Source of the DNA: Macrostomum lignano
Lineage: Eukaryota
Direction of reading: 5' to 3'
Length of the DNA stretch: 64,000 bases
Assembly: GCA_002269645.1 (NCBI GenBank)
Contig: NIVC01001119.1
Span: 186,001 to 250,000 of the forward strand
A program made the translations under genes and the position numbers. Below the pieces are notes generated by a model. It saw nothing but the letters and a program-made list of their open reading frames with translations. It made no database searches and was not told the origin of the DNA. Below, one piece after another: positions 22,896 through 45,571 of this stretch (its first letter is position 1; every line of letters starts with the position of its first letter).

Positions 22896-25800
22896 GGCTG
22901 CAATTGCCACATTGACAGCCGTGCAGCCTGGCTCAGTTGGCCAGAAGCTACCAATGTAGAATTCACAACCGCAGATGAGCTGGACTCAGCTGTTGACGAT
23001 GTTGACTTGGTTGATGGAGTTCCAACTTTAAGATTTCTCTCTGCTGCAGCACTAACAGAGGACTCCAACTTTCTAAGAAATCGCTGTCTATCATTGAGTC
23101 CGCCTAGATCTGTTTGGCCTCAATTAGTTCGCAGTGCCATTAAACAGGGTCACAGTCTCAGCTTGGTTCATCTGGCCACTGTATGGCCTTTTGATGAGTT
23201 CTCAGTACTAGATACTGCGCCACTGTCTTTCACCGCAACAATTGACAGCCTTCAGAAGCCTAGTAGCTGTCGAAATCTTGCCCTGTCAGAAATCTGGTCA
23301 TTAATCTGCCTGGCTGTGATCAACCGATGCCGAAATAACTCGGCTTCATCCGCAACTGCACCAGCATCAATTCGCTTTCATTTGCCTGGTCAGCCGCCAT
23401 CTGCGCAGCAGCAGTTTGCTTTCCTTGATCAGCTAGCAAGTTGCGGCGATGTTAGCAGATCTGTTCAAGTTGATCTTGACGTTGCTGTTGAAGGTCAAAA
23501 TGAACTGTTGCGCCTAGCGTCTGTTGTATCGCGCTGTTATCGAGGTCAGCTACGCTTGCGACGACTTTGTGTAGCATCCGTGCATCCAATGAAACTGTTG
23601 AGCGTTGTAAACGAACTTAAAATTGGTAGCTGGAGAAGTGTTAATGAAGAGGTGGGTTTTTATAACAGCGTATTCAGATTTTGTGAATATAGATTTTAGT
23701 ATATAGGACTAGCAATCAGCGCCCCCCATTGGGACGGGGAGGCAACATATATAGAAATCCACATTTTTGGGATAAACTACATGTAAGTCTTTTAACATGT
23801 ACTGTTAGTATCCTAAGGAAAACGTGTTAAAAGCAGAAAAGATCCCCTGTAATCTTTGGAATTTTAAGCCCTGGCCTAAGCCTAACTCTCCTTCGATCTA
23901 CTTCGATCAATTGACCCTTGGCATCTCAGCGATTCTCCCCAAGAACAAAAAAAACACAAGTTCGAACCAGATAGACGAATTCAGTATCGAATAAAACATG
24001 AATAGCTGATGTGTGTATTAAGTCACCCGATCCTAAAACCTTACAGGCCTATGCTGTTACCCTAACAAAATTAAACTAAGCTAGAGGGCCCTTACTTTCT
24101 TTTCGTTATAAATCGCGCACACGACTAGCGTCTATCTTGTATTTGCAGCACAAGTTAATCTATATTTTTCTTTCCCAGTCGCTACCGATCAGTGTTTGTC
24201 TAACAGACACCGATCTGAGCATTGGCAGCCTATCTCAGGCCAATGCTAGTCAACTTTGGCAAAGTATTCTTGACAATGCAACCTGCCTGGACCTGAGCCG
24301 TAGTCGCCTTGATCGTCGTTCAGTTATTAGCCTAGGAGCGCTGTTAGGCCTGGCCTCAGTTGATCCCAATAATGCAGCAAATGCAACACCAATGAGCAGC
24401 CGTTTGCAGCATCTCAATTTAAGCGGCAATCCTGGCATCCAGCTGCCTTCTTTTGGTTCTACAATCGACAATTTGACTGCTTTGTGCCTTGCCGGCTGCA
24501 GATTGCGAGCGAACTCATCAGATCTGTTGGCTGTTATGAACGCTTGTCGTTTGACTTTGCAGCATTTGGATCTGTCCGATAATCCTTTGCTGCTTCCGGC
24601 GGAAGTGATTGAAACTTCCGGCGCTTCGTTCTATGGTAAACAGCCTTGTATGAGGGTTGTACACCCCGTGTCCTTCATTGGTTGTACACCCCGTATCCTT
24701 ATATAGTTGTATGACCCGTGTTCTTAGATAGTAAGGTACACCCAGTGTCCTTAGGTTGTTGTAAACCAGGGGCGACAAACTTTTACCGCAAGGGCCAGAT
24801 AGAGAATCTAGCGCATGACTGCGGGCCAGAGGATTGGAAGAGAGGAGAGAAAAGAGAGATAGGAGAAAGGAGATGAGGTAATAAAGAAAGTGAGAGGAGA
24901 CGAGATGAGGGATGAAATCGAAGAGAGGGAAAAGGAAAGAGGAGAGGAGAGAGGGAAGAGGAGAGGAGCGAGGGAAGAGGAAAGGAGGGAAGGGAAGAGG
25001 AGAGAAGGAAGAGGAGAGGAGGGAGGTAAGAGGAGGGAAGGAAGAGGAGAGAAGGGAGGGAAGAGGAGAGGAGGGAGGGAAGAGGAGAGGAGGGAGGGAA
25101 GAGGAGAGGAGGGAGGGAAAAGGAGAGGAGGGAGGGAAGAGGAGGGAGGGAAGAGGAGAGGAGGGAAGAGGAGAGAGGGAGGGAGGGAAGTGGAGAGAGG
25201 GAAGAGGAGGGAGGGAAGAGGAGAGGAGGTAGGGAAGAGGAGGGAGGGAAGAGCAGAGAGGGACGAGGAGGGAGGGAAGAGGAGGGAGGGATGAGGAGAG
25301 GAGGTAGGGAAGAGGAGAGAGGGAAGAGGAGGGAGGGAAGAGGAGAGGAGGTAGGGAAGAGGAGGTAGGGAAGAGGAGGGAGGGAAGAGGAGAGGAGGTA
25401 GGGAAGAGGAGGGAGGGAAGAGGAGAGAGGGAAGAGGAGGGAGGGAAGAGGAGAGAGGGAAGAGGAGGGAGGGAAGAGGAGAGAGGGAAGAGGAGGGAGG
25501 GAAGAGGAGAGGAGGTAGGGAAGAGGAGGGAGGGAAGAGGAGGGAGGGAAGAGGAGGGAGGGAAGAGGAGAGAGGGAAGAGGAGGTAGGGAAGAGGAGGG
25601 AGGGAAGAGGAGAGGAGGTAGGGAAGAGGAGAGGAGGTAGGGAAGAGGAGGGAGGGAAGAGGAGGGAGGGAAGAGGAGGGAGGGAAGAAGATGGAGGGAT
25701 GAGGAGAGGAGAGAGGGAAGAGATTTGGGAGATAAGAAAGAGAAAAGAGCTGAGAAGAGCCGCAAACCTTGAGCAGGCCAGATTTCTATTGTGAAGTTTC

Positions 25801-26448
25801 TATTGCTATTGTGAACCGGATAGAGAGGCTTCGCGGGCCATGTTTGCCGACCCCTGTTGTAAACACTATCCTGTGTCCTGTGTCCTTCAAGATGTGTCCA
25901 TAGACCTTAGACAGTGCAGTGCCATTAGTGGACGCGTGTCCTGAAGATATTCTGTTTAACTATTACGAGTGTCCTACTTGAACAATTTCACTTCTCCAGC
26001 AGAACTGTTTCGTCTGCAACGGCTGTCCTCGCTACGCCTAGCCTGTCTAACCAGTCCTGATGGATTGGACAGGGAAATTGGAGCCAACGGAAGCAACTCT
26101 TCGGTAGCTTTACTATTAGACTCTGTGCTAACCGGCTGCCCTAAATTGTGCCGGTTAGACATTAGCGATTGGCCAGTTGGCACTAGAGATTGGGCCACTA
26201 GCTTGCTGCCGATACTACTAACTAGTAGCGATGCGAGTAGGTCGCACTCTCTGAAATTGCTAGTGCTCAGCTGGCCTAGAGGCTATCAAGCGGACGATTG
26301 GTCCGATGGAAGCGGCGAATTTCGTGACGCTGATGATGGCGAAGATTTGGAAGAATTTCAAGCCGAGCTGGATATTGAAGCCAGGGACTCCTATGCTACT
26401 GGTGTTGATCGTTTGCAGTCTGCTGGCTGCGGTCTTGTTTGGGTCTAA
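22896..26448 (+). CDS. Leucine-rich-repeat (RNI-like) protein, at least 3 exons, no ATG at the 5' end
   Basis: Exons 22896-23651, 24179-24635 and about 25970-26448 are phase-compatible (the last acceptor is uncertain). LRR units LDLSRSRL, LQHLNLSGNP, LTALCLAGCRL, LQHLDLSDNP, LCRLDISDWP. Confidence 0.7.
23703..23945 (+). repeat. Unclassified interspersed repeat (copy 1)
   Basis: GGACTAGCAATCAGCGCCCCCC...AAACTACATG...CAATTGACCCTTGGCAT shared with 53543-53730. Confidence 0.65.
24767..25856 (+). mobile_element. hAT MITE with an expanded internal GA-rich polypurine tract
   Basis: TIRs CAGGGGCGACAAAC and GTTTGCCGACCCCTG; perfect 8-bp TSD TTGTAAAC (24759-24766, 25857-25864). Confidence 0.9.
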
Positions 26449-26478
26449 TATTTCCATTGTAGGCTCTCTGTGGTTTCT

Positions 26479-27065
26479 AATGTTGTCAATTTGTTTGCAA
26501 TTAACTATTGAGATTTTCAGACCGGAAGTGTCAAAATAGCTAATGAGGCTTCCAGACCGGAAGTGTCAAATTAGCTAATGAGGCTTCCAGACCGGAAGTG
26601 TCAAATTAGCTAATTAGGCTTCCAGACCGGAAGTGTCAAAATAGCTAATTAGGCTTCCAGACCGGAAGTGTCAAAATAGCTAATTAGGCTTCCAGACCGG
26701 AAGGGTCAAAATAGCTAATTAGGCTTCCAGACCGGAAGTGTCAAATTAGCTAATCAGCTTCCAGACCGGAAGTTTCAAATTAGCTAATTAATGTTGTCAA
26801 TTTGTTTGCGATTAACTATTGAGATTTTCAGACCGGAAGTGTCAAAATAGCTAATGAGGCTTCCAGACCGGAAGTGTCAAATTAGCTAATGAGGCTTCCA
26901 GACCGGAAGTGTCAAATTAGCTAATTAGGCTTCCAGACCGGAAGTGTCAAAATAGCTAATTAGGCTTCCAGACCGGAAGTGTCAGATTAGCTAATTAAGC
27001 TTCCAGACCGGAAGTGTCAAAATAGCTAATGAGGCTTCCAGACTGGAAGTGTCAAATTAGCTACC
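26479..27065. repeat. 35-bp minisatellite carrying ACCGGAAGTG, about 15 copies in two duplicated blocks
   Basis: Unit TTCCAGACCGGAAGTGTCAAAATAGCTAATGAGGC; the unique lead-in AATGTTGTCAATTTG recurs at 26479 and about 26790. Confidence 0.95.
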
Positions 27066-27469
27066 GAGACTACCAGTAGCTTGTTAAAACATTGCGTGGA
27101 CCTTGATTGTTGCTAATTGATTATTGAACGACGATTTGCCTTTCAGTTTTAATTGGAAAATACTGTCTCACTGTTTGATCAACGCTTTAAAATTGCTTTA
27201 TTTATGTGCCAATAAATCTATATACGACTATTCATGCCAATGAATAGTATTTATTTAATTAATAAATACATATTTTATTTAAAAAAACTTGGTTACTAAT
27301 TTTAATAAGTTAGATTTGGCTTACAGCTTTTTAATTTTTATTGGCAGCAATTAAATTTCACTAGATCCAAATCTAAAGTCTTAGACTTTACATCGTACGC
27401 CTCATCCCAATCCCTTTATTAAACAATTCACCCAAATCCCTACCTCAAACCCTTCACCAGATCCCTAAT

Positions 27470-28165
27470 TCAACCCTTCGCCCAGATCCGTACTTCAAAA
27501 CCTTCACCCAGATCCCTACTTCAAAACCTTCACCCAGATCCCTACTTCAACCCTTTCACCCAGATCCCTACTTTAACACTTTCACCCAGATCCCTACTTC
27601 AACCCTTTCACCCAGATCCCTACTTCAACACTTTCACCCAGATCCCTACTTCAACACTTTCACCCAGATCCCTACTTCAACCCTTTCACCCAGATCCCTA
27701 CTTCAACACTTTCACCCAGATCCCTACTTCAACCCTTTCACCCAGATCCCTACTTCAACACTTTCACCCAGATCCCTACTTCAAAACCTTCACCCAGATC
27801 CCTACTTCAAAACCTTCACCCAGATCCCTACTTCAAAACCTTCATCCAGATCCCTACTTCAACCCTTTCACCCAGATCCCTACTTCAAAACCTTCACCCA
27901 GATCCCTACTTCAAAACCTTCACCCAGATCCCTACTTCAACCCTTTCACCCAAATCCCTACTTCAAAACCTTCACCCAGATCCCTACTTCAAAACCTTCA
28001 CCCAGATCCCTACTTCAACCCTTTCACCCAAATCCCTACTTCAAAGCCTTCACCCAGATCCCTACTTCAAAACCTTCACCCAGATCCCTACTTCAACCCT
28101 TTCATCCAAATCCCTACTTCAAAACCTTCACCCAGATCCCTACTTCAACCATTTACCCAGATCCC
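27470..28165. repeat. 26-bp minisatellite (CCCAGATCCCTACTTCAAAACCTTCA)
   Basis: About 26 tandem copies; a related degenerate array lies at 33860-34420. Confidence 0.95.
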
Positions 28166-28909: not shown

Positions 28910-29191
28910 ATGTCGGCCCAGTCGCCAGCCTCAATGTCGCTAATGGAACAGGAGCTGAATCGGGCTCAGATTCGAGAGATTTTCACCTCGTTTAATCGAT
29001 CGCATCAGCGCTGCTTCACCGATTGCGTTAACAAATTCGACAGGCGAAGCGTTAGCGATTCGGAGAAGAATTGCGTAGCAAACTGCGTGGCCAAGTATAT
29101 GAATACTACTCAGAGAATTTCTATGCGATTCCAGGAGCACCAGGCCATGATCACGGGCGGCGGGGCTGTTGCTCAAGGCCAGGGAAAATAG
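28910..29191 (+). CDS. TIMM9: Mitochondrial intermembrane-space small Tim chaperone Tim9
   Basis: Twin CX3C motif (CFTDC...CVANC) followed by KYMNTTQRISMRFQEHQ, typical of Tim9. Confidence 0.85.
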   Translation: MSAQSPASMSLMEQELNRAQIREIFTSFNRSHQRCFTDCVNKFDRRSVSDSEKNCVANCVAKYMNTTQRISMRFQEHQAMITGGGAVAQGQGK

Positions 29192-29505
29192 ACTGCTTTG
29201 CGAATGTTTTTTATAGTCTGGTTGGCATTTTAAGCATCCTAGTAAAGTACATAATTTAATAATTGTCAACAACTATTGTCTGTTTTGTCCGCAACAAAAA
29301 GTGCAATTTTGTCTTTCTTTCTTTCAGATTCCAGCTTGCAGACTAGTAAAACAGTAGGATAGGATCACTGGAGGTTGGTTTTTTAGTTGCAAATAGATTT
29401 GCGAGATATGAAGTTTTCTGGGTTTTAGCACTGTATCGACAGAATACCATCTTCTGAATTTTTGAATTGCAAATGAAACGAATTGATTAAGGAGTAAATT
29501 TTTAA

Positions 29506-30064
29506 CAGGCCTTAGCAATCCATGGCTCCGGGCCAGATGAGAGAGGAAAGGAGAGGGAACAAAGAGAGAAAAGAGAAGATAAAAGATGAGAAGATAAAAT
29601 TTTTGCACTTACTTTCATATACGGCAATCTTTTTAGCGGTTGTGAAGTTTCGCGGTTGTGAAAGTAGGTGATTTAGCGGTTGTGAAGCTTCGCGGTTGTG
29701 AAAGTAGGTGATTTAGCGGTTGTGAAGTTTCGCGGTTGTGAAAGTAGGTGATTTAGCGGTTATGAAAGTAGGTGATTTAGCGGTTGTGAAATTTCGCGTT
29801 TGTGAAAGCAATCCGTCTTGCTCAAGGACACAAATTGTTCTTATTAGCATCGGGAATAGAACCCCGTACCTTCAAGTCGTGCGTCCGACGCTCTGACCAC
29901 TAGGCTATTGTAAAACCCCTTTAGAAGATTGAAAGAGTTGAAAGGAGAGAGGAGGTAAGACAGCTGAAAAGAGACCTTGAGCGGGCCGGATCGCCATTGT
30001 GAGTTTCAAAGGACCCCAAGACCGGATAGAAGCTTCGCGAGCCGGAGTTTGCCGACCAACTCCT
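29506..30064 (+). mobile_element. Degenerate copy of the GA-tract hAT MITE family, interrupted by a SINE
   Basis: CATGGCTCCGGGCCAGA left part and ACCTTGAGCGGGCCGGAT...GTTTGCCGACC right part match 24767-25856; no TSD seen. Confidence 0.6.
29620..29910 (-). mobile_element. tRNA-derived SINE with tandem-repeat tail
   Basis: Minus strand shows A box TAGCCTAGTGG, B box GGTTCTATTCC, then GTGTCCTTGAGCAAGAC (a core motif seen in V/Meta-type SINEs), then about 40-bp tandem repeats. Confidence 0.65.
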
Positions 30065-30402
30065 GGACTAGCAAAGGCACACTTGAGCACAAGCACAACA
30101 AAAATTTCCATCAGAACGTCTTTTGCCTGATTGCTCGCCTCCATGGCTAGAAAAAAATAGTTTGATTAACTTGCGAAAGACACTTTGGTATTTTGCTCCA
30201 TATAAAATTCGGAACCTCAGAAGGTGAAGTTTTGTCTGTATTTTGTGGCGATAACCAGCCTCCAGTGAAATTTGAGTGCAGAGTCCTGCTTTGATTATCC
30301 ATGGTCAAAAGTCAGTTGCGTATCTGAGATGAAATTTCATCGACAGCTCCAAAAGTGGAAAAAAAGTCCAACTTTTAAATATTTGTAATATAAATTCTTC
30401 AG

Positions 30403-31578
30403 GAAAGCCAACCGTCTGCTGTAACAGTGGCAGCAACAGCGCCACAGTGCGTCGCAGCTGAAGCTTCACATTCATCTGAGAGCCAAGTTGAAGTTAACAA
30501 ACTAGTTGAACTAACAGATTGCAATCTTAACTTAGAAGCAAGCCAGGGTCGAAGTCAGCAAGCTAATAAACAACGATTTAAACAAGCGCGAGCGCCTCCG
30601 CCTGCAAAACAACAAGCTGAGGCATGCCAGTCATTGAATTTCCGTAATCCAGTAACCGCACGTTATCCAAACACGGATCAGTTGTGGCACAGAGTTGGAG
30701 AATTATCCCTATTCGATTGGTCAGTGTCCGGCAACGAGACTTGCATAGTAGTTCGCGGTCGAGGCTTCTGCATCGCTCTAGACGTTGGCGCCTGCCCGCC
30801 GCAGGCTGTGGACGCCGATCACGTGTTTATTAGTCACGGTCACGTTGATCATTGCGGCGCATTGCACATGCATATTAGAAAGCGTCAGTTGCTTAGACTG
30901 CCACCGGCTGTCTACTACATGCCCGAATGTCTAATAAATTCAATGCAATCTACATTGGCTGCATTTGTTACCATGCAAGGTGACAGCGACTATGCGGAAA
31001 TGGTGTCCAACTCTAGACTTGTCGGTTTGAAAGTTGGCGATCGAGTTCCAATTAGTAATGACAATAATCAGCCTGCCGATGCAGCCAGTCTGACCTTGAG
31101 CGTATTCGCTACTGATCATCGGGTGCCCAGTTTGGGCTGCATATTGCGCCGTAGACACATCGTTTTGCTGCCTGAATGTCGTCGACTGAGCCAGGATGAG
31201 CTGCGAGCACGGGTTGCTCAGGGCCTGCCAGTGCGCGGTCCCGAGTGGGAGCCGTTGCTAGGCTACACTGGAGACACCAGATTCAATGTATTCTTAACGC
31301 CGCAAGATCCGGACTTGTTGCGCGTTAGATTGCTCATTTCCGAGTTGACATTTTTGAGTGGTTCGATTGAACGCGCAGATAGTTTTGGACATTGTCACGT
31401 TGATCAATTTGCGCAGCATTGGAGACTGTTTGGCGCTGTGAATCGGCTTGTGTTTGTGCACTTTAGCAATAAGGTTTTGCCGGAAGAGATTCTTGAGCGG
31501 GTGTACTCAACTTTGCCTCAACAGCTGGGTCGCAGAGTCTACTGCGGACTGATTGCCAAGAGATTGCTGTATTCATGA
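30403..31578 (+). CDS. TM-type short-form tRNase Z (metallo-beta-lactamase fold), paralogue 1; 5' end at an in-frame acceptor
   Basis: WSVSGNET (EGxSxxG-like), SHGHVDH, TDHRVPSLG, GYTGDT, SELT, GHCH and VHFS motifs. The first genomic in-frame ATG lies downstream of HxHxDH. Confidence 0.8.
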   Translation, partial: ESQPSAVTVAATAPQCVAAEASHSSESQVEVNKLVELTDCNLNLEASQGRSQQANKQRFKQARAPPPAKQQAEACQSLNFRNPVTARYPNTDQLWHRVGELSLFDWSVSGNETCIVVRGRGFCIALDVGACPPQAVDADHVFISHGHVDHCGALHMHIRKRQLLRLPPAVYYMPECLINSMQSTLAAFVTMQGDSDYAEMVSNSRLVGLKVGDRVPISNDNNQPADAASLTLSVFATDHRVPSLGCILRRRHIVLLPECRRLSQDELRARVAQGLPVRGPEWEPLLGYTGDTRFNVFLTPQDPDLLRVRLLISELTFLSGSIERADSFGHCHVDQFAQHWRLFGAVNRLVFVHFSNKVLPEEILERVYSTLPQQLGRRVYCGLIAKRLLYS

Positions 31579-32920: not shown

Positions 32921-33793
32921 TGTCTGTCAGTGCCCGATCCCCTCCTGCCCCTGCCGGCATGGATGGCTGGCCTGTTTGCCCTGCTAATCGCTGTTGGCTT
33001 TGTGCTCAGCCTGTACCTGTGGGAGCTCGGCTCGGCCAATGCTCGAGCTGGGGTTGATCGCGACAATCCTAAAGTGATTATTCGCAGGTTTCTCGGCGTC
33101 TCAGCGGTTAGTTTAAGCGTGCTAATCTGCTATAGGTACTTTCTGATGAAGCCGACAGCTGCCAGCTGGTCAGATGTGCTCCAGCTGATCGGTCTGAGAT
33201 GGTCCGGAATGCTGCCAGCTGTTGGAGCATCCTTGTTGCTAACCGCTATTCTGTTCACTGGCCCGATTCTGCTAGCCTGGGAGACTGGCGACGGATTCTT
33301 TGATAGGGAACCGCTGCTGAGTTTGAGATGCTGCCGCACTTTAGTGTTGGCTCCGGTCACTGAGGAGCTGTGCTTTCGCGCCCTGATGCTGCCGGTGCTG
33401 TGCGTTCATCTCTCTTGCACTCGGGCGGCCTTCCTGTCGCCGCTGTTCTTCGGCTTGGCGCATTTTCATCATTTGATTAACCGGCTACAGCGCGGCTATC
33501 CGCTTGTGCCCAGCCTGATTCAGGCAACGTTTCAATTCTCCTACACTTACATATTCGGCGTGTATTCGGCCTACTTGTATTTGAGAACTGGCCAGTTAGC
33601 TGCCGCCTGCGCCGCGCATTCCTTCTGCAATCTGATGGGTTTCCCTGATTTTGAGGCGCTGGCCAATCTGCGAGGAATTAAGCTGGCGGTGCACGGCGGC
33701 GCCTTTGTTTTGGGCTTGGTTGGTTGGCTGGCCCTGCTGGGGCGGCTGACCGAACCAGCGATGTTTGCTTCGCAGTGCGACTGCTTCTGGTAG
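32921..33793 (+). CDS. RCE1: CAAX prenyl protease 2 (CPBP family)
   Basis: EELCFR, FGLAHFHH and HSFCNLMGFP catalytic motifs plus multiple TM helices. Start is either the in-frame acceptor at 32920 or the ATG at 32963. Confidence 0.92.
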   Translation, partial: CLSVPDPLLPLPAWMAGLFALLIAVGFVLSLYLWELGSANARAGVDRDNPKVIIRRFLGVSAVSLSVLICYRYFLMKPTAASWSDVLQLIGLRWSGMLPAVGASLLLTAILFTGPILLAWETGDGFFDREPLLSLRCCRTLVLAPVTEELCFRALMLPVLCVHLSCTRAAFLSPLFFGLAHFHHLINRLQRGYPLVPSLIQATFQFSYTYIFGVYSAYLYLRTGQLAAACAAHSFCNLMGFPDFEALANLRGIKLAVHGGAFVLGLVGWLALLGRLTEPAMFASQCDCFW

Positions 33794-33859
33794 CGAGTTG
33801 TTTGATCCATCTATTAACTGTTGTTGCGAGTTTACTTGCTTTTTATATACATCTAACCC

Positions 33860-34420: not shown

Positions 34421-35021
34421 CCAGTCAGCCAGTTTAAGCCTAAAATCCCCAACTTCAATAAAATATTTGTGAATCTTTATTTTTGCGTCCTAAAAATGGT
34501 GTGGCTTTACTTGTTAGTAACTTTTCAAATATAAATTTGTTAGTTGTTTCTGCAAGAACATTTGCACTCTTCTATCAGCTAAGGTTTATGTTTACTCTTG
34601 TAAGTTTTGTTACATTGTTTATACATGTACGTTAAGCATTGAGAGTTTTCTACTCAACGAATCAGTCAATCAATCGATATTTATTCAAATTTGCTGAAAA
34701 AGTTAAACTGAATTTAATCTGTTGGCAGTCATTTTTCCTGATTTTTAATTCATACTTTTGTAAGTTTTTATTTTCAATTTCTCATTTATGCGACTTTGGT
34801 TATTATTCTTAACAGTGAGGCAAAGAGATTACTTTTTTCAATAAATGTATTACGGACGGAATTACTGGCTACTTTCCTACTTGACAAGCTGGTTTATCTT
34901 GCTACTTAATTATATTTAGTTTTACCAGACTTATTCTTATTTTCCTGATTGCTCCAGGTGCTTAAACCATTGTTGTAGGAATGTAAAGGTAGTTATTTGT
35001 TTATTAGATTTTAAGGCCGTT

Positions 35022-38000
35022 GCAGTAATCAGGGATTGTGTCGGGGTTGCAGTGTTGCAGTAATCAGGGATTGTGTCGGGGTTGCAGTGTTGCAGTAATC
35101 AGGGATTGTGTCGGGGTTGCAGTGTTGCAATAATCAGGGATTGTGTCGGGGTTGCAGTGTTGCAGTAATCAGGGATTGTGTCGGGGTTGCAGTGTTGCAG
35201 TAATCAGGGATTGTGTCGGGGTTGCAGTGTTGCAGTAATCAGGGATTGTGTCGGGGTTGCAGTGTTGCAGTAATCAGGGATTGTGTCGGGGTTGCAGTGT
35301 TGCAGTAATCAGGGATTGTAGCAGGGTTGCAGTGTTGCAGTAATCAGGGATTGTGTCGGGGTTGCAGTGTTGCAATAATCAGGGATTGTGTCGGGGTTGC
35401 AGTGTTGCAGTAATCAGGGATTGTGTCGGGGTTGCAGTGTTGCAATAATCAGGGATTGTAGCGGGGTTGCAGTGTTGCAGTAATCAGGGACTGTAGCAGG
35501 GTTGCAGTGTTGCAATAATCAGGGACTGTAGCAGGGTTGCAGTGTTGCAATAATCAGGGATTGTGTCGGGGTTGCAGTGTTGCAGTAATCAGGGATTGTG
35601 TCGGGGTTGCAGTGTTGCAATAATCAGGGATTGTGTCGGGGTTGCAGTGTTGCAGTAATCAGGGATTGTAGCAGGGTTGCAGTGTTGCAGTAATCAGGGA
35701 TTGTAGCAGGGTTGCAGTGTTGCAGTAATCAGGGATTGTGTCGGGGTTGCAGTGTTGCAGTAATCAGGGATTGTGTCGGGGTTGCAGTGTTGCAATAATC
35801 AGGGATTGTGTCGGGGTTGCAGTGTTGCAATAATCAGGGATTGTGTCGGGGTTGCAGTGTTGCAGTAATCAGGGATTGTGTCGGGGTTGCAGTGTTGCAA
35901 TAATCAGGGATTGTGTCGGGGTTGCAGTGTTGCAGTAATCAGGGACTGTAGCAGGGTTGCAGTGTTGCAATAATCAGGGACTGTAGCAGGGTTGCAGTGT
36001 TGCAATAATCAGGGATTGTGTCGGGGTTGCAGTGTTGCAGTAATCAGGGATTGTGTCGGGGTTGCAGTGTTGCAGTAATCAGGGATTGTGTCGGGGTTGC
36101 AGTGTTGCAATAATCAGGGATTGTGTCGGGGTTGCAGTGTTGCAATAATCAGGGATTGTGTCGGGGTTGCAGTGTTGCAGTAATCAGGGATTGTGTCGGG
36201 GTTGCAGTGTTGCAATAATCAGGGATTGTAGCGGGGTTGCAGTGTTGCAGTAATCAGGGACTGTAGCAGGGTTGCAGTGTTGCAATAATCAGGGACTGTA
36301 GCAGGGTTGCAGTGTTGCAATAATCAGGGATTGTGTCGGGGTTGCAGTGTTGCAGTAATCAGGGATTGTGTCGGGGTTGCAGTGTTGCAGTAATCAGGGA
36401 TTGTGTCGGGGTTGCAGTGTTGCAGTAATCAGGGATTGTAGCAGGGTTGCAGTGTTGCAGTAATCAGGGATTGTGTCGGGGTTGCAGTGTTGCAGTAATC
36501 AGGGATTGTGTCGGGGTTGCAGTGTTGCAATAATCAGGGATTGTGTCGGGGTTGCAGTGTTGCAGTAATCAGGGATTGTGTCGGGGTTGCAGTGTTGCAA
36601 TAATCAGGGATTGTAGCGGGGTTGCAGTGTTGCAGTAATCAGGGACTGTAGCAGGGTTGCAGTGTTGCAATAATCAGGGACTGTAGCAGGGTTGCAGTGT
36701 TGCAATAATCAGGGATTGTGTCGGGGTTGCAGTGTTGCAGTAATCAGGGATTGTGTCGGGGTTGCAGTGTTGCAATAATCAGGGATTGTGTCGGGGTTGC
36801 AGTGTTGCAGTAATCAGGGATTGTAGCAGGGTTGCAGTGTTGCAGTAATCAGGGATTGTAGCAGGGTTGCAGTGTTGCAGTAATCAGGGATTGTGTCGGG
36901 GTTGCAGTGTTGCAGTAATCAGGGATTGTGTCGGGGTTGCAGTGTTGCAATAATCAGGGATTGTGTCGGGGTTGCAGTGTTGCAATAATCAGGGATTGTG
37001 TCGGGGTTGCAGTGTTGCAGTAATCAGGGATTGTGTCGGGGTTGCAGTGTTGCAATAATCAGGGATTGTGTCGGGGTTGCAGTGTTGCAGTAATCAGGGA
37101 CTGTAGCAGGGTTGCAGTGTTGCAATAATCAGGGACTGTAGCAGGGTTGCAGTGTTGCAATAATCAGGGATTGTGTCGGGGTTGCAGTGTTGCAGTAATC
37201 AGGGATTGTGTCGGGTTGCAGTGTTGCAGTAATCAGGGATTGTGTCGGGGTTGCAGTGTTGCAATAATCAGGGATTGTGTCGGGGTTGCAGTGTTGCAAT
37301 AATCAGGGATTGTGTCGGGGTTGCAGTGTTGCAGTAATCAGGGATTGTGTCGGGGTTGCAGTGTTGCAATAATCAGGGATTGTAGCGGGGTTGCAGTGTT
37401 GCAGTAATCAGGGACTGTAGCAGGGTTGCAGTGTTGCAATAATCAGGGACTGTAGCAGGGTTGCAGTGTTGCAATAATCAGGGATTGTGTCGGGGTTGCA
37501 GTGTTGCAGTAATCAGGGATTGTGTCGGGGTTGCAGTGTTGCAGTAATCAGGGATTGTGTCGGGGTTGCAGTGTTGCAGTAATCAGGGATTGTAGCAGGG
37601 TTGCAGTGTTGCAGTAATCAGGGATTGTAGCAGGGTTGCAGTGTTGCAGTAATCAGGGATTGTGTCGGGGTTGCAGTGTTGCAATAATCAGGGATTGTGT
37701 CGGGGTTGCAGTGTTGCAGTAATCAGGGATTGTGTCGGGGTTGCAGTGTTGCAGTAATCAGGGATTGTGTCGGGGTTGCAGTGTTGCAGTAATCAGGGAT
37801 TGTGTCGGGGTTGCAGTGTTGCAGTAATCAGGGACTGTAGCAGGGTTGCAGTGTTGCAATAATCAGGGACTGTAGCAGGGTTGCAGTGTTGCAGTAATCA
37901 GGGACTGTAGCAGGGTTGCAGTGTTGCAATAATCAGGGATTGTGTCGGGGTTGCAGTGTTGCAGTAATCAGGGATTGTGTCGGGGTTGCAGTGTTGCAGT

Positions 38001-39825
38001 AATCAGGGATTGTGTCGGGGTTGCAGTGTTGCAATAATCAGGGATTGTGTCGGGGTTGCAGTGTTGCAATAATCAGGGATTGTGTCGGGGTTGCAGTGTT
38101 GCAGTAATCAGGGATTGTGTCGGGGTTGCAGTGTTGCAATAATCAGGGATTGTAGCGGGGTTGCAGTGTTGCAGTAATCAGGGACTGTAGCAGGGTTGCA
38201 GTGTTGCAATAATCAGGGACTGTAGCAGGGTTGCAGTGTTGCAATAATCAGGGATTGTGTCGGGGTTGCAGTGTTGCAGTAATCAGGGATTGTGTCGGGG
38301 TTGCAGTGTTGCAATAATCAGGGATTGTAGCGGGGTTGCAGTGTTGCAGTAATCAGGGACTGTAGCAGGGTTGCAGTGTTGCAATAATCATGGACTGTAG
38401 CAGGGTTGCAGTGTTGCAATAATCAGGGATTGTGTCGGGGTTGCAGTGTTGCAGTAATCAGGGATTGTGTCGGGGTTGCAGTGTTGCAGTAATCAGGGAT
38501 TGTGTCGGGGTTGCAGTGTTGCAATAATCAGGGATTGTGTCGGGGTTGCAGTGTTGCAATAATCAGGGATTGTGTCGGGGTTGCAGTGTTGCAGTAATCA
38601 GGGATTGTGTCGGGGTTGCAGTGTTGCAATAATCAGGGATTGTGTCGGGGTTGCAGTGTTGCAGTAATCAGGGATTGTGTCGGGGTTGCAGTGTTGCAGT
38701 AATCAGGGATTGTGTCGGGGTTGCAGTGTTGCAGTAATCAGGGATTGTGTCGGGGTTGCAGTGTTGCAGTAATCAGGGATTGTGTCGGGGTTGCAGTGTT
38801 GCAGTAATCAGGGATTGTGTCGGGGTTGCAGTGTTGCAGTAATCAGGGATTGTGTCGGGGTTGCAGTGTTGCAGTAATCAGGGATTGTGTCGGGGTTGCA
38901 GTGTTGCAGTAATCAGGGATTGTGTCGGGGTTGCAGTGTTGCAGTAATCAGGGATTGTGTCGGGGTTGCAGTGTTGCAGTAATCAGGGATTGTGTCGGGG
39001 TTGCAGTGTTGCAGTAATCAGGGATTGTGTCGGGGTTGCAGTGTTGCAGTAATCAGGGATTGTGTCGGGGTTGCAGTGTTGCAGTAATCAGGGATTGTAG
39101 CGGGGTTGCAGTGTTGCAGTAATCAGGGATTGTAGCGGGGTTGCAGTGTTGCAGTAATCAGGGATTGTAGCGGGGTTGCAGTGTTGCAGTAATCAGGGAT
39201 TGTAGCGGGGTTGCAGTGTTGCAGTAATCAGGGATTGTAGCGGGGTTGCAGTGTTGCAGTAATCAGGGATTGTAGCGGGGTTGCAGTGTTGCAGTAATCA
39301 GGGATTGTAGCGGGGTTGCAGTGTTGCAGTAATCAGGGATTGTAGCGGGGTTGCAGTGTTGCAGTAATCAGGGATTGTAGCGGGGTTGCAGTGTTGCAGT
39401 AATTAGGGATTGTAGCGGGGTTGCAGTGTTGCAGTAATCAGGGATTGTAGCGGGGTTGCAGTGTTGCAGTAATCAGGGATTGTAGCGGGGTTGCAGTGTT
39501 GCAGTAATCAGGGATTGTAGCGGGGTTGCAGTGTTGCAGTAATCAGGGATTGTAGCGGGGTTGCAGTGTTGCAGTAATCAGGGATTGTAGCGGGGTTGCA
39601 GTGTTGCAATAATCAGGGATTGTGTCGGGGTTGCAGTGTTGCAGTAATCAGGGATTGTGTCGGGGTTGCAGTGTTGCAGTAATCAGGGATTGTAGCGGGG
39701 TTGCAGTGTTGCAGTAATCAGGGATTGTAGCGGGGTTGCAGTGTTGCAATAATCAGGGATTGTGTCGGGGTTGCGGTGTTGCAATAATCAGGGATTGTAG
39801 CGGGGTTGCAGTGTTGCAGTAATCA
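35022..39825. repeat. 4.8-kb 35-bp satellite, about 137 copies, with higher-order variant structure
   Basis: Unit GCAGTAATCAGGGATTGTGTCGGGGTTGCAGTGTT. Confidence 0.99.
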
Positions 39826-40016
39826 AGGCAATTAATACACGTGCCGTTAATGGTACGCTCGTATTTAGCTCATTGCATCACAATGTGAGAATCAAAAAGC
39901 CTTTTAAAAATAAATTTCGTTGGAATTTATGTACCGTTGCGTAAGAATAAAAGTAGAAAGATACAGAAAACTGGTTTTGGCTGCCCTGAGCAGTTAGTTC
40001 AAGCCGGGGTGACACA

Positions 40017-41045
40017 ATGTCCCATAGTGACGAGGGTGCGGAGACCGCCAAAGCGGCCAGTTGGGTCGAGTTTTTTGCCGACCAACCGCAGAACAAGCTG
40101 CGAGTGTTCGACTGGTCAGTGTCCGGCTTTGAGACTTGCATAGTAGTCCACGGTCCCAGCTTTCGTCTGGCGCTGGACATTGGCGCCTGTCCGCCGCAGG
40201 CAATCAGCGCCGATCACGTGTTCATTAGTCACGGTCACGTGGACCATTGCGGAGCACTGCACCAGCACATGCGCCGGCGTCAACTGGTAGGCCTACCACC
40301 AGCTACGTACTACGTGCCGGGGCATCTGGTCCAGCCGCTGATTGACATTGCTCGGCTATTCAGCGTCGTACATGGCGACGAAGACGAGGACAACGAAGGA
40401 GGTTCTGCGAAACTGTCGACGAAAGATAAAAAATCCAAGAAAGAGGATGCCACTGTCGCAGACGGTGCCTCAGCCGAAGCTGGGAGTGACGAAATAAAAA
40501 TCTACGGCAAAATTGTAGCCGCTACTCCGGGTGACGATCTGCAACTGTCAAAGAATCTTCGCATTCGTCCGTTCGCCACAGATCATCGAGTACCCAGCAT
40601 TGGCTGTCTGGTGTACTGCAAGCGCAGCCAGTTGCTACCCAAATATGCCGGCCTGCCGGGTGCGGAACTTGCCGAACTGGCTCGCAACGGGGAACAGTTA
40701 CGAGAGGCTCGGTGGGAACCCGCTATCGGCTATACAGGGGATACCAGATTCACTGTTCTAGCGTGTCCTCCCGAACCCGACCTGCTCAAGGTTAGACTGC
40801 TAGTCTGCGAGCTAACCTACGTTGAAGGGCCGACAGATACAGCTGAGAAATACGGTCATTGTCATTTGCACGATTTCTCGTCGCGTGCAAATCTGTTTGA
40901 CAATGTTGGCCAGCTGTTGTTTGTGCACTTTAGTAGGCGGCACTCGCCTGACCAAGTGATTAACGCTGTGCTGACTTCGCTGCCAGAGGAGCTACGGTCT
41001 AAGGTCTACTGCGGACTCAATGCTCTGCGGTTCTACCGTTCCTGA
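40017..41045 (+). CDS. TM-type short-form tRNase Z, paralogue 2, intronless, 342 aa
   Basis: WSVSGFET, SHGHVDH, TDHRVPSIG, GYTGDT, CELT, GHCH and VHFSRRH motifs; AATAAA at about 41080. Confidence 0.85.
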   Translation: MSHSDEGAETAKAASWVEFFADQPQNKLRVFDWSVSGFETCIVVHGPSFRLALDIGACPPQAISADHVFISHGHVDHCGALHQHMRRRQLVGLPPATYYVPGHLVQPLIDIARLFSVVHGDEDEDNEGGSAKLSTKDKKSKKEDATVADGASAEAGSDEIKIYGKIVAATPGDDLQLSKNLRIRPFATDHRVPSIGCLVYCKRSQLLPKYAGLPGAELAELARNGEQLREARWEPAIGYTGDTRFTVLACPPEPDLLKVRLLVCELTYVEGPTDTAEKYGHCHLHDFSSRANLFDNVGQLLFVHFSRRHSPDQVINAVLTSLPEELRSKVYCGLNALRFYRS

Positions 41046-41276
41046 ATGATACTGACTTATTTTACTATTCTATTAGTACAATAAATAAAGTTTATACTGA
41101 TGTTTTGCCTTTGTTTTCTCAGACAGTTTTTAATAAAAAGTTTTAAACATCGTGTCTTTGATTAATTCAACTTTCTATTTTACAAACTAAACTGTAAAAA
41201 TTTCAGCTAGAATTTCACTGCCGTAGCTACAAAACTGAGCTGATTTCGATTCGGAGCTGCACTCCAAACATTAATT

Positions 41277-41597
41277 ATGACTGCCGAGGTTAAACATGCT
41301 GCGGGGTTGGACAGCCGGCAGCCTCCTATGAAAGAGGTGGGTTTTTTGCACTTTCTGTAGGAGTGGCCTGTTGTGTGCCTTGTCTGTCTGCCCTGTCCTA
41401 TTCTGTCTGTCTGTTCTGTCTGCCCTGTCCTATTCTGTCTGTCTGTTCTGTCTGCCCTGTCCTGTTCTGTCTGTCTGTTCTGTCTGCCCTGTCCTGTTCT
41501 GTCTGTCTGTTCTGTCTGTCCTGTCCTGTTCTGTCTGTGTTCTGTCTGGTTGTCTGTCTGTCTGTCTGTCTGTCTGTTCTGTCTGTGTTCTGTCTGG

Positions 41598-41629
<32 letters not shown>

Positions 41630-41855
41630 TCTGTCTGTGTGTTCTGTCCTGTCCTGTTCTGTCTGTCTGTCTGTTGTCTGTCTGTCCTGTCCTGTTCTGT
41701 CTGTGTTCTGTCTGTTCTGTCCTGTTCTGTCTGTGTTCTGTCTGGTTGTCTGTCTGTCTGTCTGTCTGTTCTGTCTGTGTGTTCTGCCCTGTCCTGTTCT
41801 GTCTGTCTGTCTGTTGTCTGTCTGTCCTGTCCTGTTCTGTCTGTGTTCTGTCTGG

Positions 41856-41929
<74 letters not shown>

Positions 41930-41946
41930 GGTTGTCTGTCTGTCTT

Positions 41947-42014
<68 letters not shown>

Positions 42015-45000
42015 CCTGTCCTGCAGACCTGCATGATCCACCTTACTACTCCATTTGCATTCCATCCCAGCTGCAATTCGCTGTCAACATGACCTGTCAA
42101 TCATGCGCCGACTCGGTCAGTCGAGTTCTATCCAGTCACCAGCCGGCAAGCGACTTCGCGGACATCCGAATTCAACTGACTGAACAGCAGGTCATCCTGC
42201 GCACTTCGCTGCACGTTGACTCAGTGCTGGAGCTGCTGGAGACCACCGGCTGTCGGGCTGTGCTGCAAGGCGTTGGCACAGCCAGCCAGGGCATGCGGGG
42301 TCAGGACTTCGCATCTGGCGTCGTACAATTGGAATCAGTTTATACTACTAATACTAGTAGTGTCCAGGGAGTAGTTCGAATTTTGCAGCCAGACGATCAG
42401 CAGTGCCTGTTCGATGGCACAGTGGACGGTCTGGAGCGCGACAGTTGGTACAGCCTCGAGGTCCGTCAGGGCGGTGATCTGTCTGGGGGGTCTGACACAT
42501 GTGGTCCGGTGTATAATGACGGCTCTGATGATGCACAGGTGCGTTCTGTGTTATATATCCCTGTTTTTGTCTGTCTGCATCTTGGGGTGTACGCTCTCTC
42601 ACCTTACAGCATTCGCTCTCTCACCTTACAGCATCCGCTCTCTCACCTTACAGCATCCGCTCTCTCACCTTACAGCATTCGCTCTCTCACCTTACAGCAT
42701 CCGCTCTCTCACCTTACAGCATCCGCTCTGTCACCTTACAGCATCCGCTCTCTCACCTTACAGCATCCGCTCTCTCACCTTACAGCATCCGCTCTCTCAC
42801 CTTACAGCATTCGCTCTCTCACCTTACAGCATCCGCTCTCTCACCTTACAGCATCCGCTCTGTCACCTTACAGCATCCGCTCTCTCACCTTACAGCATCC
42901 GCTCTCTCACCTTACAGCATCCGCTCTCTCACCTTACAGCATCCGCTCTCTCACCTTACAGCATCCGCTCTCTCACCTTACAGCATCCGCTCTCTCACCT
43001 TACAGCATCCGCTCTCGCACCTTACAGCATCAGCTTCCTCATCAGTTACAGCATCCGCTCCCTCATCAGTTACAGCATCAGCTTCCTCATCAGTTACAGC
43101 ATCCGCTCCCTCATCAGTTACAGCATCTGCTTCCTCATCAGTTACAGCATCCGCTCCCTCATCAGTTACAGCATCTGCTTCCTCATCAGTTACAGCATCC
43201 GCCCAGTATCTGTCAGCATCTGTCTCATGTTGCAAACTGAAAAAATATCTGATAGAGTTATTTCTGTAGACAAGGTTTAGCTATAAATGTTTTCAGCCTG
43301 CCGAAAAGACATTTATATACATAGAAACATACAAAAAATCAACTAACAACAGCGTCTCCATGGCAACTCAAATGCCTACGGCCTGACCAGCGTGCTAGCG
43401 GACGAGTTGACCTGCCCGCGGCCTCATCTAGTCCCAGTCGCCTCAGGTTTCCTATCCAACGATTTGCGACCGCTAAGCGGCTTGCAAAAGTTTCTGGCCG
43501 CTAATTTTCCCGCCCCAGACTTGCGGCATCTGAAGCGGGCCGCCCCGGCCGCCTCCGCGCCTGACTGCAGTCGCCGATTTCGCGTTCTCCTTTGCCACGC
43601 CGCCGACTTACCTAATTTGGAATGTTCTGAAGAATTTTCAACGATTTGGAGACCTAAATTAGATAGCGTAGAAATTGTTATGGCGCCGGGTAGTGCGCCG
43701 CGTACCAGGCGACAATGGGAGCTCACTTCCGGTTATTGGCCCTGCTCGTTTCATGCTGACAAGTCTATCGAATCGGAGCTGTCGTTGGATTGCTTTACTA
43801 AAGCTGAAGGTGTCGCTTGTCTGAGGCATATGCTGCGCTCGCTGGCTCTCGGTCGAACTTCCGGTTCTGCGTCTGCCGATACTTCCGGTCTGAAACCCGC
43901 ATCCACTTCCGGTTCCACGTCTGCTGATACTTTCGGCCTGAAACCCGCTTTCATTTCCGGAGCCGCGTCTACCGATACTTCCGGTCTGAAACCCGGTTCC
44001 ACGTCTGCTGATACTTCCGGTCTGAAACCCGGTTCCACGTCTGCTGATACTTCCGGTCTGAAACCCGGTTCCACGTCTGCTGATACTTCCAGTCTGAAAC
44101 CCGGTTCCACGTCTGCTGATACTTCCGGTCTGAAACCCGGTTCCACGTCTGCTGATACTTCCAGTCTGAAACCCGGTTCCACGTCTGCTGATACTTCCGG
44201 TCTGAAACCCGGTTCCACGTCTGCTGATACTTCCAGTCTGAAACCCGGTTCCACGTCTGCTGATACTTCCGGTCTGAAACCCGGTTCCACGTCTACCGCT
44301 ACTTCCGGTCTGAAACCTCCTTCCGCTTCCGGTTCCGCGCCTGCTGATACTTCCTGTCTGAAACCCGCTTCCACTTCCGGTCCTGCATCCGCTTCATCTT
44401 CTTCTGCATTCGCCGCTCTGCGCCTCCCAGTCCCCCAATCGGCCTGTCTAATCGTGGACCCTCGCACCGACACAGTGCTGGTGGAATGCCAAGACGAGCG
44501 CCGCCTCTGCCCGACCTGGCACGCCACCCTCCGGGCCGTCCAACAGCTGGGCGGCCGAGGCGACTACCTGTGCACCGGCCTGGACGCTTACGTCACCGAC
44601 GAGCCGTGCCACATGTGCGCTATGGCGCTGCTGCACTCCCGGGTGGCTCGGGTTTTCTACTGCCGACCGAGGCCGCGCGGCGCCCTCGGCAGCATCGCCA
44701 AACTGCACTGCCATCCGCGATTGAATCATCGGTTCCGCGTGTACCGACTTTTCCCTCTGAGTGCGGCTCGAACTGGGGAGAGTTGACGGTTGGATTGCGA
44801 TTCTTGCTTGCTCTTTAACCTGGCCCTTTGTCGGCCACCGTTGTCCTTCAGTTGGTGTAGCTACCCTTCAGTTGGTGTAGCAACCCTTCAGTTGGTGTAG
44901 CAACCCTTCAGTTGGTGTACCTACCCTTCAGTTGGTGTACCTACCCTTCCGTTGGTGTAGCAACCCTTCAGTTGGTGTACCTACCCTTCAGTTGGTGTAC

Positions 45001-45571
45001 CTACCCTTCCGTTGGTGTAAGCAACCCTTCAGTTTTTCCACTACCCAGTCTACCCTGTACCCTAATCTTCTGCGTTCTACTTTGTTCTCCTGCGCATAAA
45101 TCTATGGCATAAATAAAAGCCAATTGAAGTGAAATAATGGACGCCTGCATTTATAGCATTTTGTCTCGCTTCTTATTGGGACACTTTAAAACAAGTAATG
45201 CAAATTTTTGTTGCAATGTGCGTATCATACTACTTTTTCGTTAGTTATTTTTTTCAATCAATCCTTCCCAGTCTGACGATCCCTCCGGACTGGTCGGTCG
45301 AGTTTACACTGGGCCGAGTGGGCGGCTTCGATTCAGCTTGATTTCGAATCGACTTCGCTTATGGAATCTTGTGGGCCGCTGCCTCACAGTCAGCAAGTCT
45401 GCCGGTTGCAGCGAGAACGTCTGCGCCGCTGGCATTGTGGCGCGATCTGCAGGGCTATTCGCCAACGACAAACGAATCTGCTCCTGCGATGGCGTTGAAA
45501 TTTGGAGCGAACGCGACGTGCCATCGGTTGGGGCTGGTAGAGCCGCTGCTGCGGCCGCTTTGAAAAAGTGA
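41277..45571 (+). CDS. CCS: Copper chaperone for superoxide dismutase, 3 exons, about 275 aa
   Basis: Exons 41277-41336, 42071-42538 and 45272-45571, all phase 0. HMA domain [12 protein letters not shown], a SOD-like domain, and domain [13 protein letters not shown]...RICSCDG (CxC). Confidence 0.9.
41375..42020. repeat. Compound (TCTG)n/CCTGT microsatellite in CCS intron 1
   Basis: Source of the long CLSV and TDRQ pseudo-ORFs. Confidence 0.97.
42590..43200. repeat. 22-bp (CATCCGCTCTCTCACCTTACAG) then 24-bp (CATCAGCTTCCTCATCAGTTACAG) minisatellites in CCS intron 2
   Basis: Direct inspection. Confidence 0.95.
43353..44786 (+). CDS. ADAT3: tRNA adenosine deaminase subunit ADAT3 (Tad3), nested in CCS intron 2
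   Basis: N-domain SVLADE...PDLRHLKR and YWPCSFH; deaminase domain with HATL (no catalytic Glu), [23 protein letters not shown] and GALGS...LNHRF. Own AATAAA at 45112. Confidence 0.92.
44830..45030. repeat. About 20-bp minisatellite (CCCTTCAGTTGGTGTAGCAA) in the ADAT3 3' region
   Basis: Direct inspection. Confidence 0.9.

Follow-up and report, generated by a model that had tools for sequence, protein, structure and literature searches.

We analysed a 64,000-nt stretch of the Macrostomum lignano genome (the window), in which a leucine-rich-repeat gene (LRR), a small Tim gene (TIMM9), a first tRNase Z-like gene (Z-1), RCE1, a second tRNase Z-like gene (Z-2), CCS and ADAT3 all lie on the plus strand. 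LRR, Z-1 and ADAT3 open directly behind a splice acceptor and have no usable genomic AUG. The best overall explanation is probably that the seven genes form two units resolved by spliced leader (SL) trans-splicing, and that the AUG at the end of the leader starts the open reading frames (ORFs) that lack an ATG of their own.

The M. lignano leader is 35 nt long (CGGTCTCTTACTGCGAAGACTCAATTTATTGCATG) and ends in ...TTGCATG, next to which the SL RNA gene has a GTAAG donor; [T/C]TNCAG is the motif enriched at trans-splice acceptors, and trans-splicing affects about 30% of the genes, with about 15% belonging to operons (PMC8629364). A first-pass annotation of the window, made from sequence alone, had argued from flatworms in general, and the source species does trans-splice with a leader ending in ATG (PMC8629364). 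Its sequence is also preserved in M. cliftonense and M. hystrix, and its final ATG has been remarked on as a likely translation start (2023, PMC10468722).

In our model, the first unit would comprise LRR, small Tim, Z-1 and RCE1, and the second Z-2, CCS and, inside CCS intron 2, ADAT3. Cistrons of a precursor would be separated in that the upstream one is polyadenylated and the following acceptor receives the 35-nt leader (...UUGCAUG), and we infer that the leader is joined exactly at the AGs of Table 1 and that its AUG is translated. The terminal AUG of the leader would then be codon 1 of LRR, Z-1 and ADAT3, giving proteins that begin with MGCNCH..., MESQPS... and MRLHGN..., respectively. RCE1 would be in frame too and would probably gain a 15-residue extension (leader-encoded Met plus 14 codons), and small Tim, Z-2 and CCS would start at their own AUGs. 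Lengths of spacers would vary through expansion and contraction of satellites.

Four ORFs open in phase 0 at their acceptors without any stop between acceptor and ORF (22896, 30403, 32921 and 43353), which is true neither of TIMM9 nor of CCS at 41207. Re-checking of the sequence confirmed these four openings and every coordinate given for them by the first-pass annotation, together with its statement that the first in-frame ATG lies deep inside LRR, Z-1 and ADAT3 (codons 232, 156 and 110). Translation from the leader AUG would produce ORFs of 392 (Z-1), 291 (RCE1) and 478 aa (ADAT3), and would cover all of LRR exon 1. Throughout the ATG-less stretches the coding frame contains no stop, compared with 12 and 19 stops in the other two frames of LRR, 9 and 13 in those of Z-1, and 8 and 6 in those of ADAT3. 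The motif [T/C]TNCAG is matched by the acceptors of LRR, Z-1 and RCE1 and by the 41205 site ahead of CCS, and not by that of ADAT3; the density of YTNCAG on the plus strand is 0.006 per nt. Satellites with open frames obscured a genome-style count of YTNCAG sites that precede long ORFs.

Z-1 and ADAT3 seem to need an AUG from outside, because their first ATGs lie behind or within conserved parts. In Z-1, the first Met (156) comes after the invariant HGHVDH motif (residues 145-150), as had been claimed for this HxHxDH motif, and the conserved core extends from about residue 100. In ADAT3, the N-domain aligns with mouse ADAT3 (PDB 7nz7_B) from query residue 37 onwards (query 37-169, 7nz7_B residues 52-186), and the deaminase domain aligns at query 364-465. 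Hence the first Met (110) sits inside the conserved N-domain, in agreement with the earlier placement of this ATG past conserved N-domain motifs. RCE1 does not share this feature, as it has an ATG at codon 15. LRR has its first ATG at codon 232, but exon 1 is without homologues outside M. lignano from which essentiality could be judged: a word-indexed search was empty, and an exhaustive search returned only the M. lignano paralog and one weak match. The N-terminus of LRR may be LRRC14/PRAME-like, a label that the homologue searches did not confirm. Initiation downstream is disfavoured at LRR because nine out-of-frame ATGs come before the first in-frame one, and at RCE1 because an out-of-frame ATG in strong context lies 5 nt ahead of its own ATG. 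Thus, of the earlier proposal that several proteins have no genomic start codon, the part concerning LRR, Z-1 and ADAT3 stands in so far as none has a usable one; RCE1 has a genomic ATG, and the source of the AUG in ADAT3 is ambiguous.

Independent evidence comes from the annotation of assembly GCA_002269645.1 (Mlig_3_7), whose contig NIVC01001119.1 showed 0 mismatches to the window over 41 kb. Gene models of this assembly were derived from RNA-seq transcriptional units, which the program TBONE cut at peaks of SL reads and at poly(A) sites and in which TransDecoder called ORFs (Wudarski et al. 2017, PMC5730564). The GenBank coding sequences (CDSs) of LRR, Z-1 and RCE1 are 5'-partial, keep the frame of the acceptor and have no upstream exon in every annotated copy. 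They start 24, 12 and 9 nt past 22896 in three copies of LRR (22920 in the window), 12, 9 and 9 nt past 30403 in three copies of Z-1 (30415 in the window), and 3 nt past 32921 in the two annotated copies of RCE1 (32924), not at the internal ATG of the latter. Paralog models of Z-1, PAA71140.1 and PAA88017.1, carry the label 'partial', and the Z-1 ORF is 99% identical to GenBank M. lignano proteins. These offsets differ between copies of identical sequence, and for this reason they look like noise of read mapping rather than alternative acceptors. An alternative LRR acceptor at 22917-18, which would account for the annotated start at 22920, was rejected: it is out of frame, and other copies start at +12 and +9 without an AG despite identical sequence.

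The leader AUG is in frame in all three genes without a usable genomic AUG (LRR, Z-1 and ADAT3). Three other genes have both an ATG of their own and a predicted acceptor, and the leader AUG is in frame in one of these (RCE1), close to the 1/3 that chance would give. The probability of a phase-0 coincidence is 1/3 per gene and 1/27 for three genes. However, phase 0 is the commonest class among ordinary exons, so the coincidence is less striking than this value suggests, and by itself it is weak evidence. Its weight comes from its combination with the 5'-partial transcript models.

The whole cluster is duplicated, and two paralogous copies on contigs NIVC01000206.1 (contig 206) and NIVC01001184.1 (contig 1184) allow the acceptors to be compared. 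The LRR acceptor is identical in the three copies; LRR exon 1 has no indels among paralogs, and the 300 nt upstream of it have up to 40 indel columns. We count this step in conservation at the acceptor in favour of leader addition. A similar step is seen at ADAT3, where the window and contig 206 differ by 9.5% substitutions and 10 indel columns over the 150 nt upstream and by 0.4% without indels over the ORF, a drop in divergence which argues that ADAT3 coding starts at or near 43353. An intact ADAT3 ORF is present in the window (477 aa) and, with a smaller number of repeat units, in contig 206 (375 aa); in contig 1184 it is frameshifted after residue 64 (HLKRAA/RPPPRL). Contig 1184 also has intact copies of RCE1 and Z-2 (positions 13147-14016 and 16373-17398 of retrieved segment L005), whose products match those of the window at 100% and 98% identity, yet no gene has been called for them.

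Table 1. Genes, acceptors, repeats and predicted or rival junctions in the window (a slash marks the splice boundary; the stop is the nearest in-frame stop upstream of the exon start)
Feature	Positions	Strand	Acceptor or donor	Stop upstream	First in-frame ATG	Junction	Remarks
Rival ATG source for LRR	22063..22070	+	ATG/GTAAGA			Rival cis, 22065/22896: CTCTAATG/GGCTGCAATTG	830 nt upstream; sole ATG-ending, phase-0 candidate exon with consensus donor
LRR exon 1	22896..23651	+	cattacAG/GGC, AG 22894-22895	81 nt	codon 232	Predicted leader: ...ATTTATTGCATG/GGCTGCAATTGCCAC	252 codons
LRR exon 2	24179..24635	+					leucine-rich repeats, Pfam LRR_1
LRR exon 3	26003..26448	+	NAGNAG acceptor 26000/26003
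Small Tim (Tim9/10 family; TIMM9)	28910..29191	+	AG 28907-08		own ATG	Predicted leader: ...GCATG/AATGTCGGCCCAG	Pfam zf-Tim10_DDP, E=6.6e-18
tRNase Z-like gene 1 (Z-1)	30403..31578	+	ttcttcAG/GAA, AG 30401-02	12 nt	codon 156 (30868)	Predicted leader: ...GCATG/GAAAGCCAACCGTC	single exon, 391 codons
RCE1 (CAAX prenyl protease 2)	32921..33793	+	tattccAG/TGT, AG 32919-20	21 nt	codon 15 (32963)	Predicted leader: ...GCATG/TGTCTGTCAGTGCC	290 codons; Pfam Rce1-like
35-bp satellite, RCE1 to Z-2 gap	35019..39825	.					137 copies, 4.8 kb
tRNase Z-like gene 2 (Z-2)	40017..41045	+			genomic ATG		complete ORF
Z-2 poly(A) hexamers, U-rich spacer and motif acceptor	41080..41206	+	aatttcAG, AG 41205-06			Predicted leader, CCS: ...GCATG/CTAGAATTTCACTG	hexamers at 41080, 41084, 41132
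CCS exon 1	41277..41336	+	phase-0 donor GAG/GTGGGT		own ATG	Rival cis to ADAT3, 41336/43353: CCTATGAAAGAG/CGTCTCCATGG	ATG and 19 further codons
CCS exon 2	42071..42538	+	phase-0 donor			Rival cis to ADAT3, 42538/43353: GATGATGCACAG/CGTCTCCATGG	HMA domain and beginning of SOD-like domain
Rival leader site	43297	+				Rival predicted leader: ...GCATG/CCTGCCGAAAAGAC
ADAT3	43353..44786	+	aacaacAG/CGT, AG 43351-52	9 nt	codon 110 (43680)	Predicted leader: ...GCATG/CGTCTCCATGGCAAC	477 codons; inside CCS intron 2 (42539-45271)
Coding minisatellite in ADAT3	43857..44317	+					in-frame 36/48-nt units; linker between N-domain and deaminase domain
AATAAA after ADAT3	45112..45117	+					154 nt before CCS exon 3 acceptor
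CCS exon 3	45272..45571	+	phase-0 acceptor ccttcccAG				C-terminal part with CXC motif

Names of the first-pass annotation were upheld by searches of Pfam, NCBIfam and PDB. The Pfam domains of the seven products are LRR_1, Tim10/DDP, Lactamase_B_2 (twice), Rce1-like, HMA with Sod_Cu, and dCMP_cyt_deam. Z-1 and Z-2 are both RNase Z-like metallo-beta-lactamases with 43% identity to each other, for which NCBIfam suggested RNase Z at scores under the curated cut-offs. The exon model of LRR, with 552 codons in total from 22896, reproduces the annotated products of 544, 548 and 549 aa, and the three-exon model of CCS reproduces the annotated product of 275 aa.

Arrangement of these genes into transcriptional units can be read from GenBank locus tags, whose prefixes were assigned per transcriptional-unit cluster; unrelated neighbours with a common prefix are therefore taken to be cut from one precursor. 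Prefix Mlig021034 covers LRR (g1, on the contig of the window) and small Tim and Z-1 (g4 and g5, on contig 1184), Mlig025095 covers Z-1 (g3) and RCE1 (g4), and Mlig003964 covers Z-2 (g5) and CCS (g6), the remaining two copies of CCS being g2 and g3. No per-gene trans-splicing flags for the locus tags were found in the paper texts and supplements searched. All seven genes are on the plus strand and no gene on the opposite strand interrupts them, an arrangement expected of M. lignano operons as defined in PMC8629364. The single polycistronic unit proposed earlier is supported only in part: prefixes join LRR, TIMM9 and Z-1, then Z-1 and RCE1, and then Z-2 and CCS, but RCE1 and Z-2 are unlinked. 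Two adjacent units are probably to be favoured over one seven-gene operon, because RCE1 and Z-2 are unbridged and Z-2 carries a genomic ATG and lacks a motif acceptor upstream; Z-2 is probably the first gene of the second unit. The picture of a simple run of seven genes also needs revision, since ADAT3 is nested in CCS intron 2 rather than placed downstream, and the plus-strand run extends past CCS to an ASC-type channel gene (50196-53466).

A number of observations weigh against our model, and some of them are general. The annotated CDS starts sit 3-24 nt past the AGs and not exactly there. As judged from the leader sequence, a U occupies position -3 of the leader AUG, which makes its context weak. 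Addition of the leader to small Tim at the 28907-08 acceptor, or to CCS at 41207, would place its AUG out of frame and open an overlapping ORF of 29 codons in each case. An exact look-up of Met plus ORF and of the bare ORF for Z-1, RCE1 and ADAT3 found no transcriptome-derived protein with a leader-encoded Met in the collection, no M. lignano ADAT3 protein was found in GenBank, and ADAT3 has no transcript-based model. The other points on this side concern spacing, the 22063 site and the surroundings of ADAT3, and are taken up with the alternatives that they favour.

It is rather unlikely that there is no operon here at all, that is, that the genes are transcribed independently and singly trans-spliced or capped, and that common unit names arise from read-through or merging of assemblies. 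Long gaps would speak for this possibility. Published operons of M. lignano were defined with a threshold of 1 kb of repeat-adjusted distance, with a mode of about 100 nt (Ustyantsev & Berezikov 2021, PMC8629364). Here gaps of 1.2-6.2 kb remain at 0.9-1.3 kb after removal of tandem repeats in every case other than Z-2 to CCS, which is at or above this threshold, and RCE1 and Z-2 share a prefix in none of the copies, not even at a distance of 2.2 kb. Stop-to-acceptor distances minus tandem repeats are 1125, 1076, 1342, 876 and, for Z-2 to CCS, 161 nt, values which still contain 3' untranslated regions and unmasked transposon fragments. The genomic ATG of Z-2 and its want of a motif acceptor would fit an independent gene as well, and most trans-spliced genes of M. 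lignano lie outside operons (PMC8629364). On the other hand, three separate prefixes each cover unrelated neighbouring genes, and units tend to split at repeat-rich spacers, which the authors state to be inflated by repeats (PMC8629364). Furthermore, Z-2 to CCS is the only junction with the canonical operon spacing of about 100 nt, as the AATAAA of Z-2 (41080/41084) lies about 120 nt from the 41205 acceptor, the distance that the first-pass annotation had given for this AATAAA and the AG sites ahead of CCS.

An unlikely alternative to leader-encoded start codons is that the ATG-less ORFs are internal exons, which receive their ATG from unannotated cis-spliced upstream exons. ADAT3 could be joined in this way to CCS exon 1, as a shared 20-aa leader exon, or to exon 2, as a fusion, and LRR to an exon ending in ATG at 22065. 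The donors of CCS exons 1 and 2 are both in phase 0, so that cis-splicing into 43353 would equally be in frame, and UniProt ab initio models A0A1I8H6T2 and A0A1I8JN15 use the junction with CCS exon 2 (...DDAQ/RLHGNS). In addition, flatworm acceptors often serve both cis- and trans-splicing, and the frequency of phase 0 among ordinary exons counts on the same side. A scan of the 4 kb upstream of LRR for phase-0 exons with an ATG start and a GT[AG]AG donor gave four candidates, the nearest being that at 22063. The ATG/GTAAGA of this site is kept in both paralogs and is used in no GenBank model; about 0.13 sites of this type are expected by chance per 4 kb according to our base-composition estimate. 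Its order, ATG and then GTAAG, mimics the donor of the SL RNA, without leader sequence before it.

However, the RNA-seq-based models of LRR, Z-1 and RCE1 are 5'-partial without an upstream exon in every annotated copy, and the scan found no phase-0 ATG mini-exon with a GT[AG]AG donor upstream of Z-1 or ADAT3. A fusion of CCS and ADAT3 would have a truncated SOD-like domain, and the fusions in UniProt are chimeras of ab initio prediction, into which Z-2 and the ASC channel are drawn as well. The first-pass annotation found no upstream coding exon for LRR, Z-1 and ADAT3; this stands as far as annotation goes for LRR and Z-1, and must be qualified by the 22063 candidate of LRR and by the CCS exons from which ADAT3 can be reached in frame. 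The best loose candidate for ADAT3, a mini-exon with ATG at 43227-43274, was considered and is unlikely, given its weak donor (AAG/GTTTAG) and an indel there in a paralog with intact ADAT3.

A start at a near-cognate codon or an internal AUG, or decay of paralogs that have lost their start codons, is very improbable: the frameshifted ADAT3 of contig 1184, early CTG and GTG codons in the ADAT3 ORF and the redundant duplicated copies that M. lignano carries (PMC8629364) might suggest it, but the ATG-less structure and the acceptor are kept in every copy seen, with all ORFs intact except that one ADAT3, no other ADAT3 protein was found for the species, and an internal AUG would cost Z-1 its catalytic HxHxDH and ADAT3 most of its N-domain.

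Among the genes assigned here to leader-encoded start codons, ADAT3 is the case with most ambiguity. Its acceptor is purine-rich (7 pyrimidines in 20 nt) and lacks the motif, and the better-looking motif acceptor at 43295 is out of frame with it; both count against our model at this gene. Initiation at the leader AUG would be its likeliest start route, by a narrow preference. The gene is likely missing from GenBank because transcripts overlapping repeats were removed before submission. Models from an older assembly in UniProt (A0A1I8H6T2, A0A1I8JN15, A0A1I8F7.. and A0A1I8FFT0) fuse Z-2, CCS, ADAT3 and even the ASC channel into proteins of up to 1386 aa, one of which is misnamed 'CST complex subunit CTC1'; such models seem to be artefacts that arise when genes are predicted over polycistronic loci. 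The coding minisatellite of ADAT3 is found at 13449-14576 of retrieved segment L004 and at 19905-21148 of L005, with varying unit number. The acceptors of CCS exons 2 and 3 (42071 and 45272) are also in phase 0, and leader addition there would give in-frame truncated CCS products (e.g. MSDDPSG...).

ADAT3 is normally an essential partner subunit of the tRNA A34 deaminase. We put forward, as a tentative idea to which we would not quite commit, that the sole form of ADAT3 in M. lignano may be an unannotated cistron without start codon in a CCS intron, wholly dependent on the leader for expression at a weak acceptor and in competition with cis-splicing, so that each precursor gives CCS or else ADAT3. 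On a wider scale, many proteins of the species that GenBank labels 'partial' may be complete, with a first codon encoded by the SL RNA gene.

Satellites, both intergenic and intronic, hold orthologous positions in the three copies with very variable unit number. The 35-bp array between RCE1 and Z-2 has 137 units in the window vs 22.5 and 24.5 in the paralogs, and the gap is 6.2 kb vs 2.2-2.35 kb, so the claim that satellites of up to 4.8 kb inflate the gaps holds for 35019-39825. In retrieved paralog segments this array lies at 16960-17745 (L002) and 15339-16194 (L005). A 40-bp array has 3.4 units in the window vs 14.8 and 4.8 in the paralogs, and the three copies have 2.5, 3.7 and 1.9 kb between the stop of LRR and the start of Tim. 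On the left side of small Tim, the AG at 28907-08 is one nt ahead of the ATG at 28910, as noted earlier. On its right side, the 1.2-kb spacer to Z-1 (29192-30402) contains neither AATAAA nor ATTAAA, so the poly(A) signal of Tim must be a variant.

A repeated element occurs at 24740-25880 (LRR intron 2), 45814-47375 (downstream of CCS) and 60108-60416, with a fragment at 29962-30057. Its flanks (...GGGCCAGA... and ...GTTTGCCGACCCCTG) bracket GA-rich satellite cores, and it may be a carrier of GA satellite resembling a miniature inverted-repeat transposable element; a search for the terminal inverted repeats of such elements around GA-rich arrays showed nothing clear. The nearest gene upstream is RPL18 on the minus strand, 5.7-8.5 kb into the window (5728-8539), with two exons (8539-8099 and 6000-5728) and an intron that houses an intact transposase ORF (365 aa, DDE_3/HTH; 7696-6599, minus strand). 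Neither an SL RNA gene nor the leader sequence was found in the window with up to 5 errors allowed, and Rfam and tRNA searches of the window gave no matches.

If our model is true, GenBank wrongly treats LRR, Z-1 and RCE1 as partial and lacks ADAT3, which makes three or four conserved housekeeping proteins of this model organism for regeneration whose N-termini are encoded by the SL RNA gene. This would bear on gene models, on the design of transgenes and knock-ins, and on the tally of M. lignano genes that need trans-splicing for translation. The nested ADAT3/CCS pair would neatly illustrate how cis- and trans-splicing compete. The interpretation of the first-pass annotation is largely right, yet it rediscovers published biology of flatworms and of M. 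lignano. New here are named M. lignano genes that seemingly depend on the leader AUG and an unannotated, nested ADAT3, and the advance is modest.

These loci belong to the genome in which transcriptional units and operons of M. lignano were described (PMC5730564, PMC8629364), and share with that description gene boundaries at leader sites, repeat-inflated spacers and an enrichment of conserved housekeeping genes among trans-spliced ones; in the searched text of these papers, the leader ATG is not discussed as the start of 5'-partial CDSs. Operons of C. elegans, resolved by SL2 with spacers of about 100 nt, are similar in having cistrons on the same strand, and the Z-2 to CCS junction, with its poly(A) signal about 120 nt before the acceptor, resembles them most. 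M. lignano differs from C. elegans in having a single leader type and mostly kilobase-long, satellite-filled spacers, and the nematode leader gives no AUG. ORFs whose start codon is created by leader addition have been termed slORFs, and the tool slORFfinder was used with ribosome footprints on nematodes, Oikopleura and trypanosomes, not on Macrostomum (PMC9851317).

The nearest precedent is Schistosoma mansoni, where, according to the account of Cheng et al. 2006 in PMC9851317, translation is initiated at the leader AUG, which is needed by >40 cDNAs and falls in frame in 28% of the mRNAs that are trans-spliced; this result of Cheng, Cohen, Ndegwa & Davis (J Biol Chem 2006) is also cited in PMC5832876 and PMC12582326. 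As far as that account goes, both systems have a leader ending in AUG, phase-0 acceptors and recipients without a usable AUG of their own. Unlike S. mansoni, M. lignano is a free-living macrostomorph, the evidence presented here is of genomic and annotation origin rather than from cDNAs and translation assays, and one of its putative recipients, ADAT3, lies nested within an intron.

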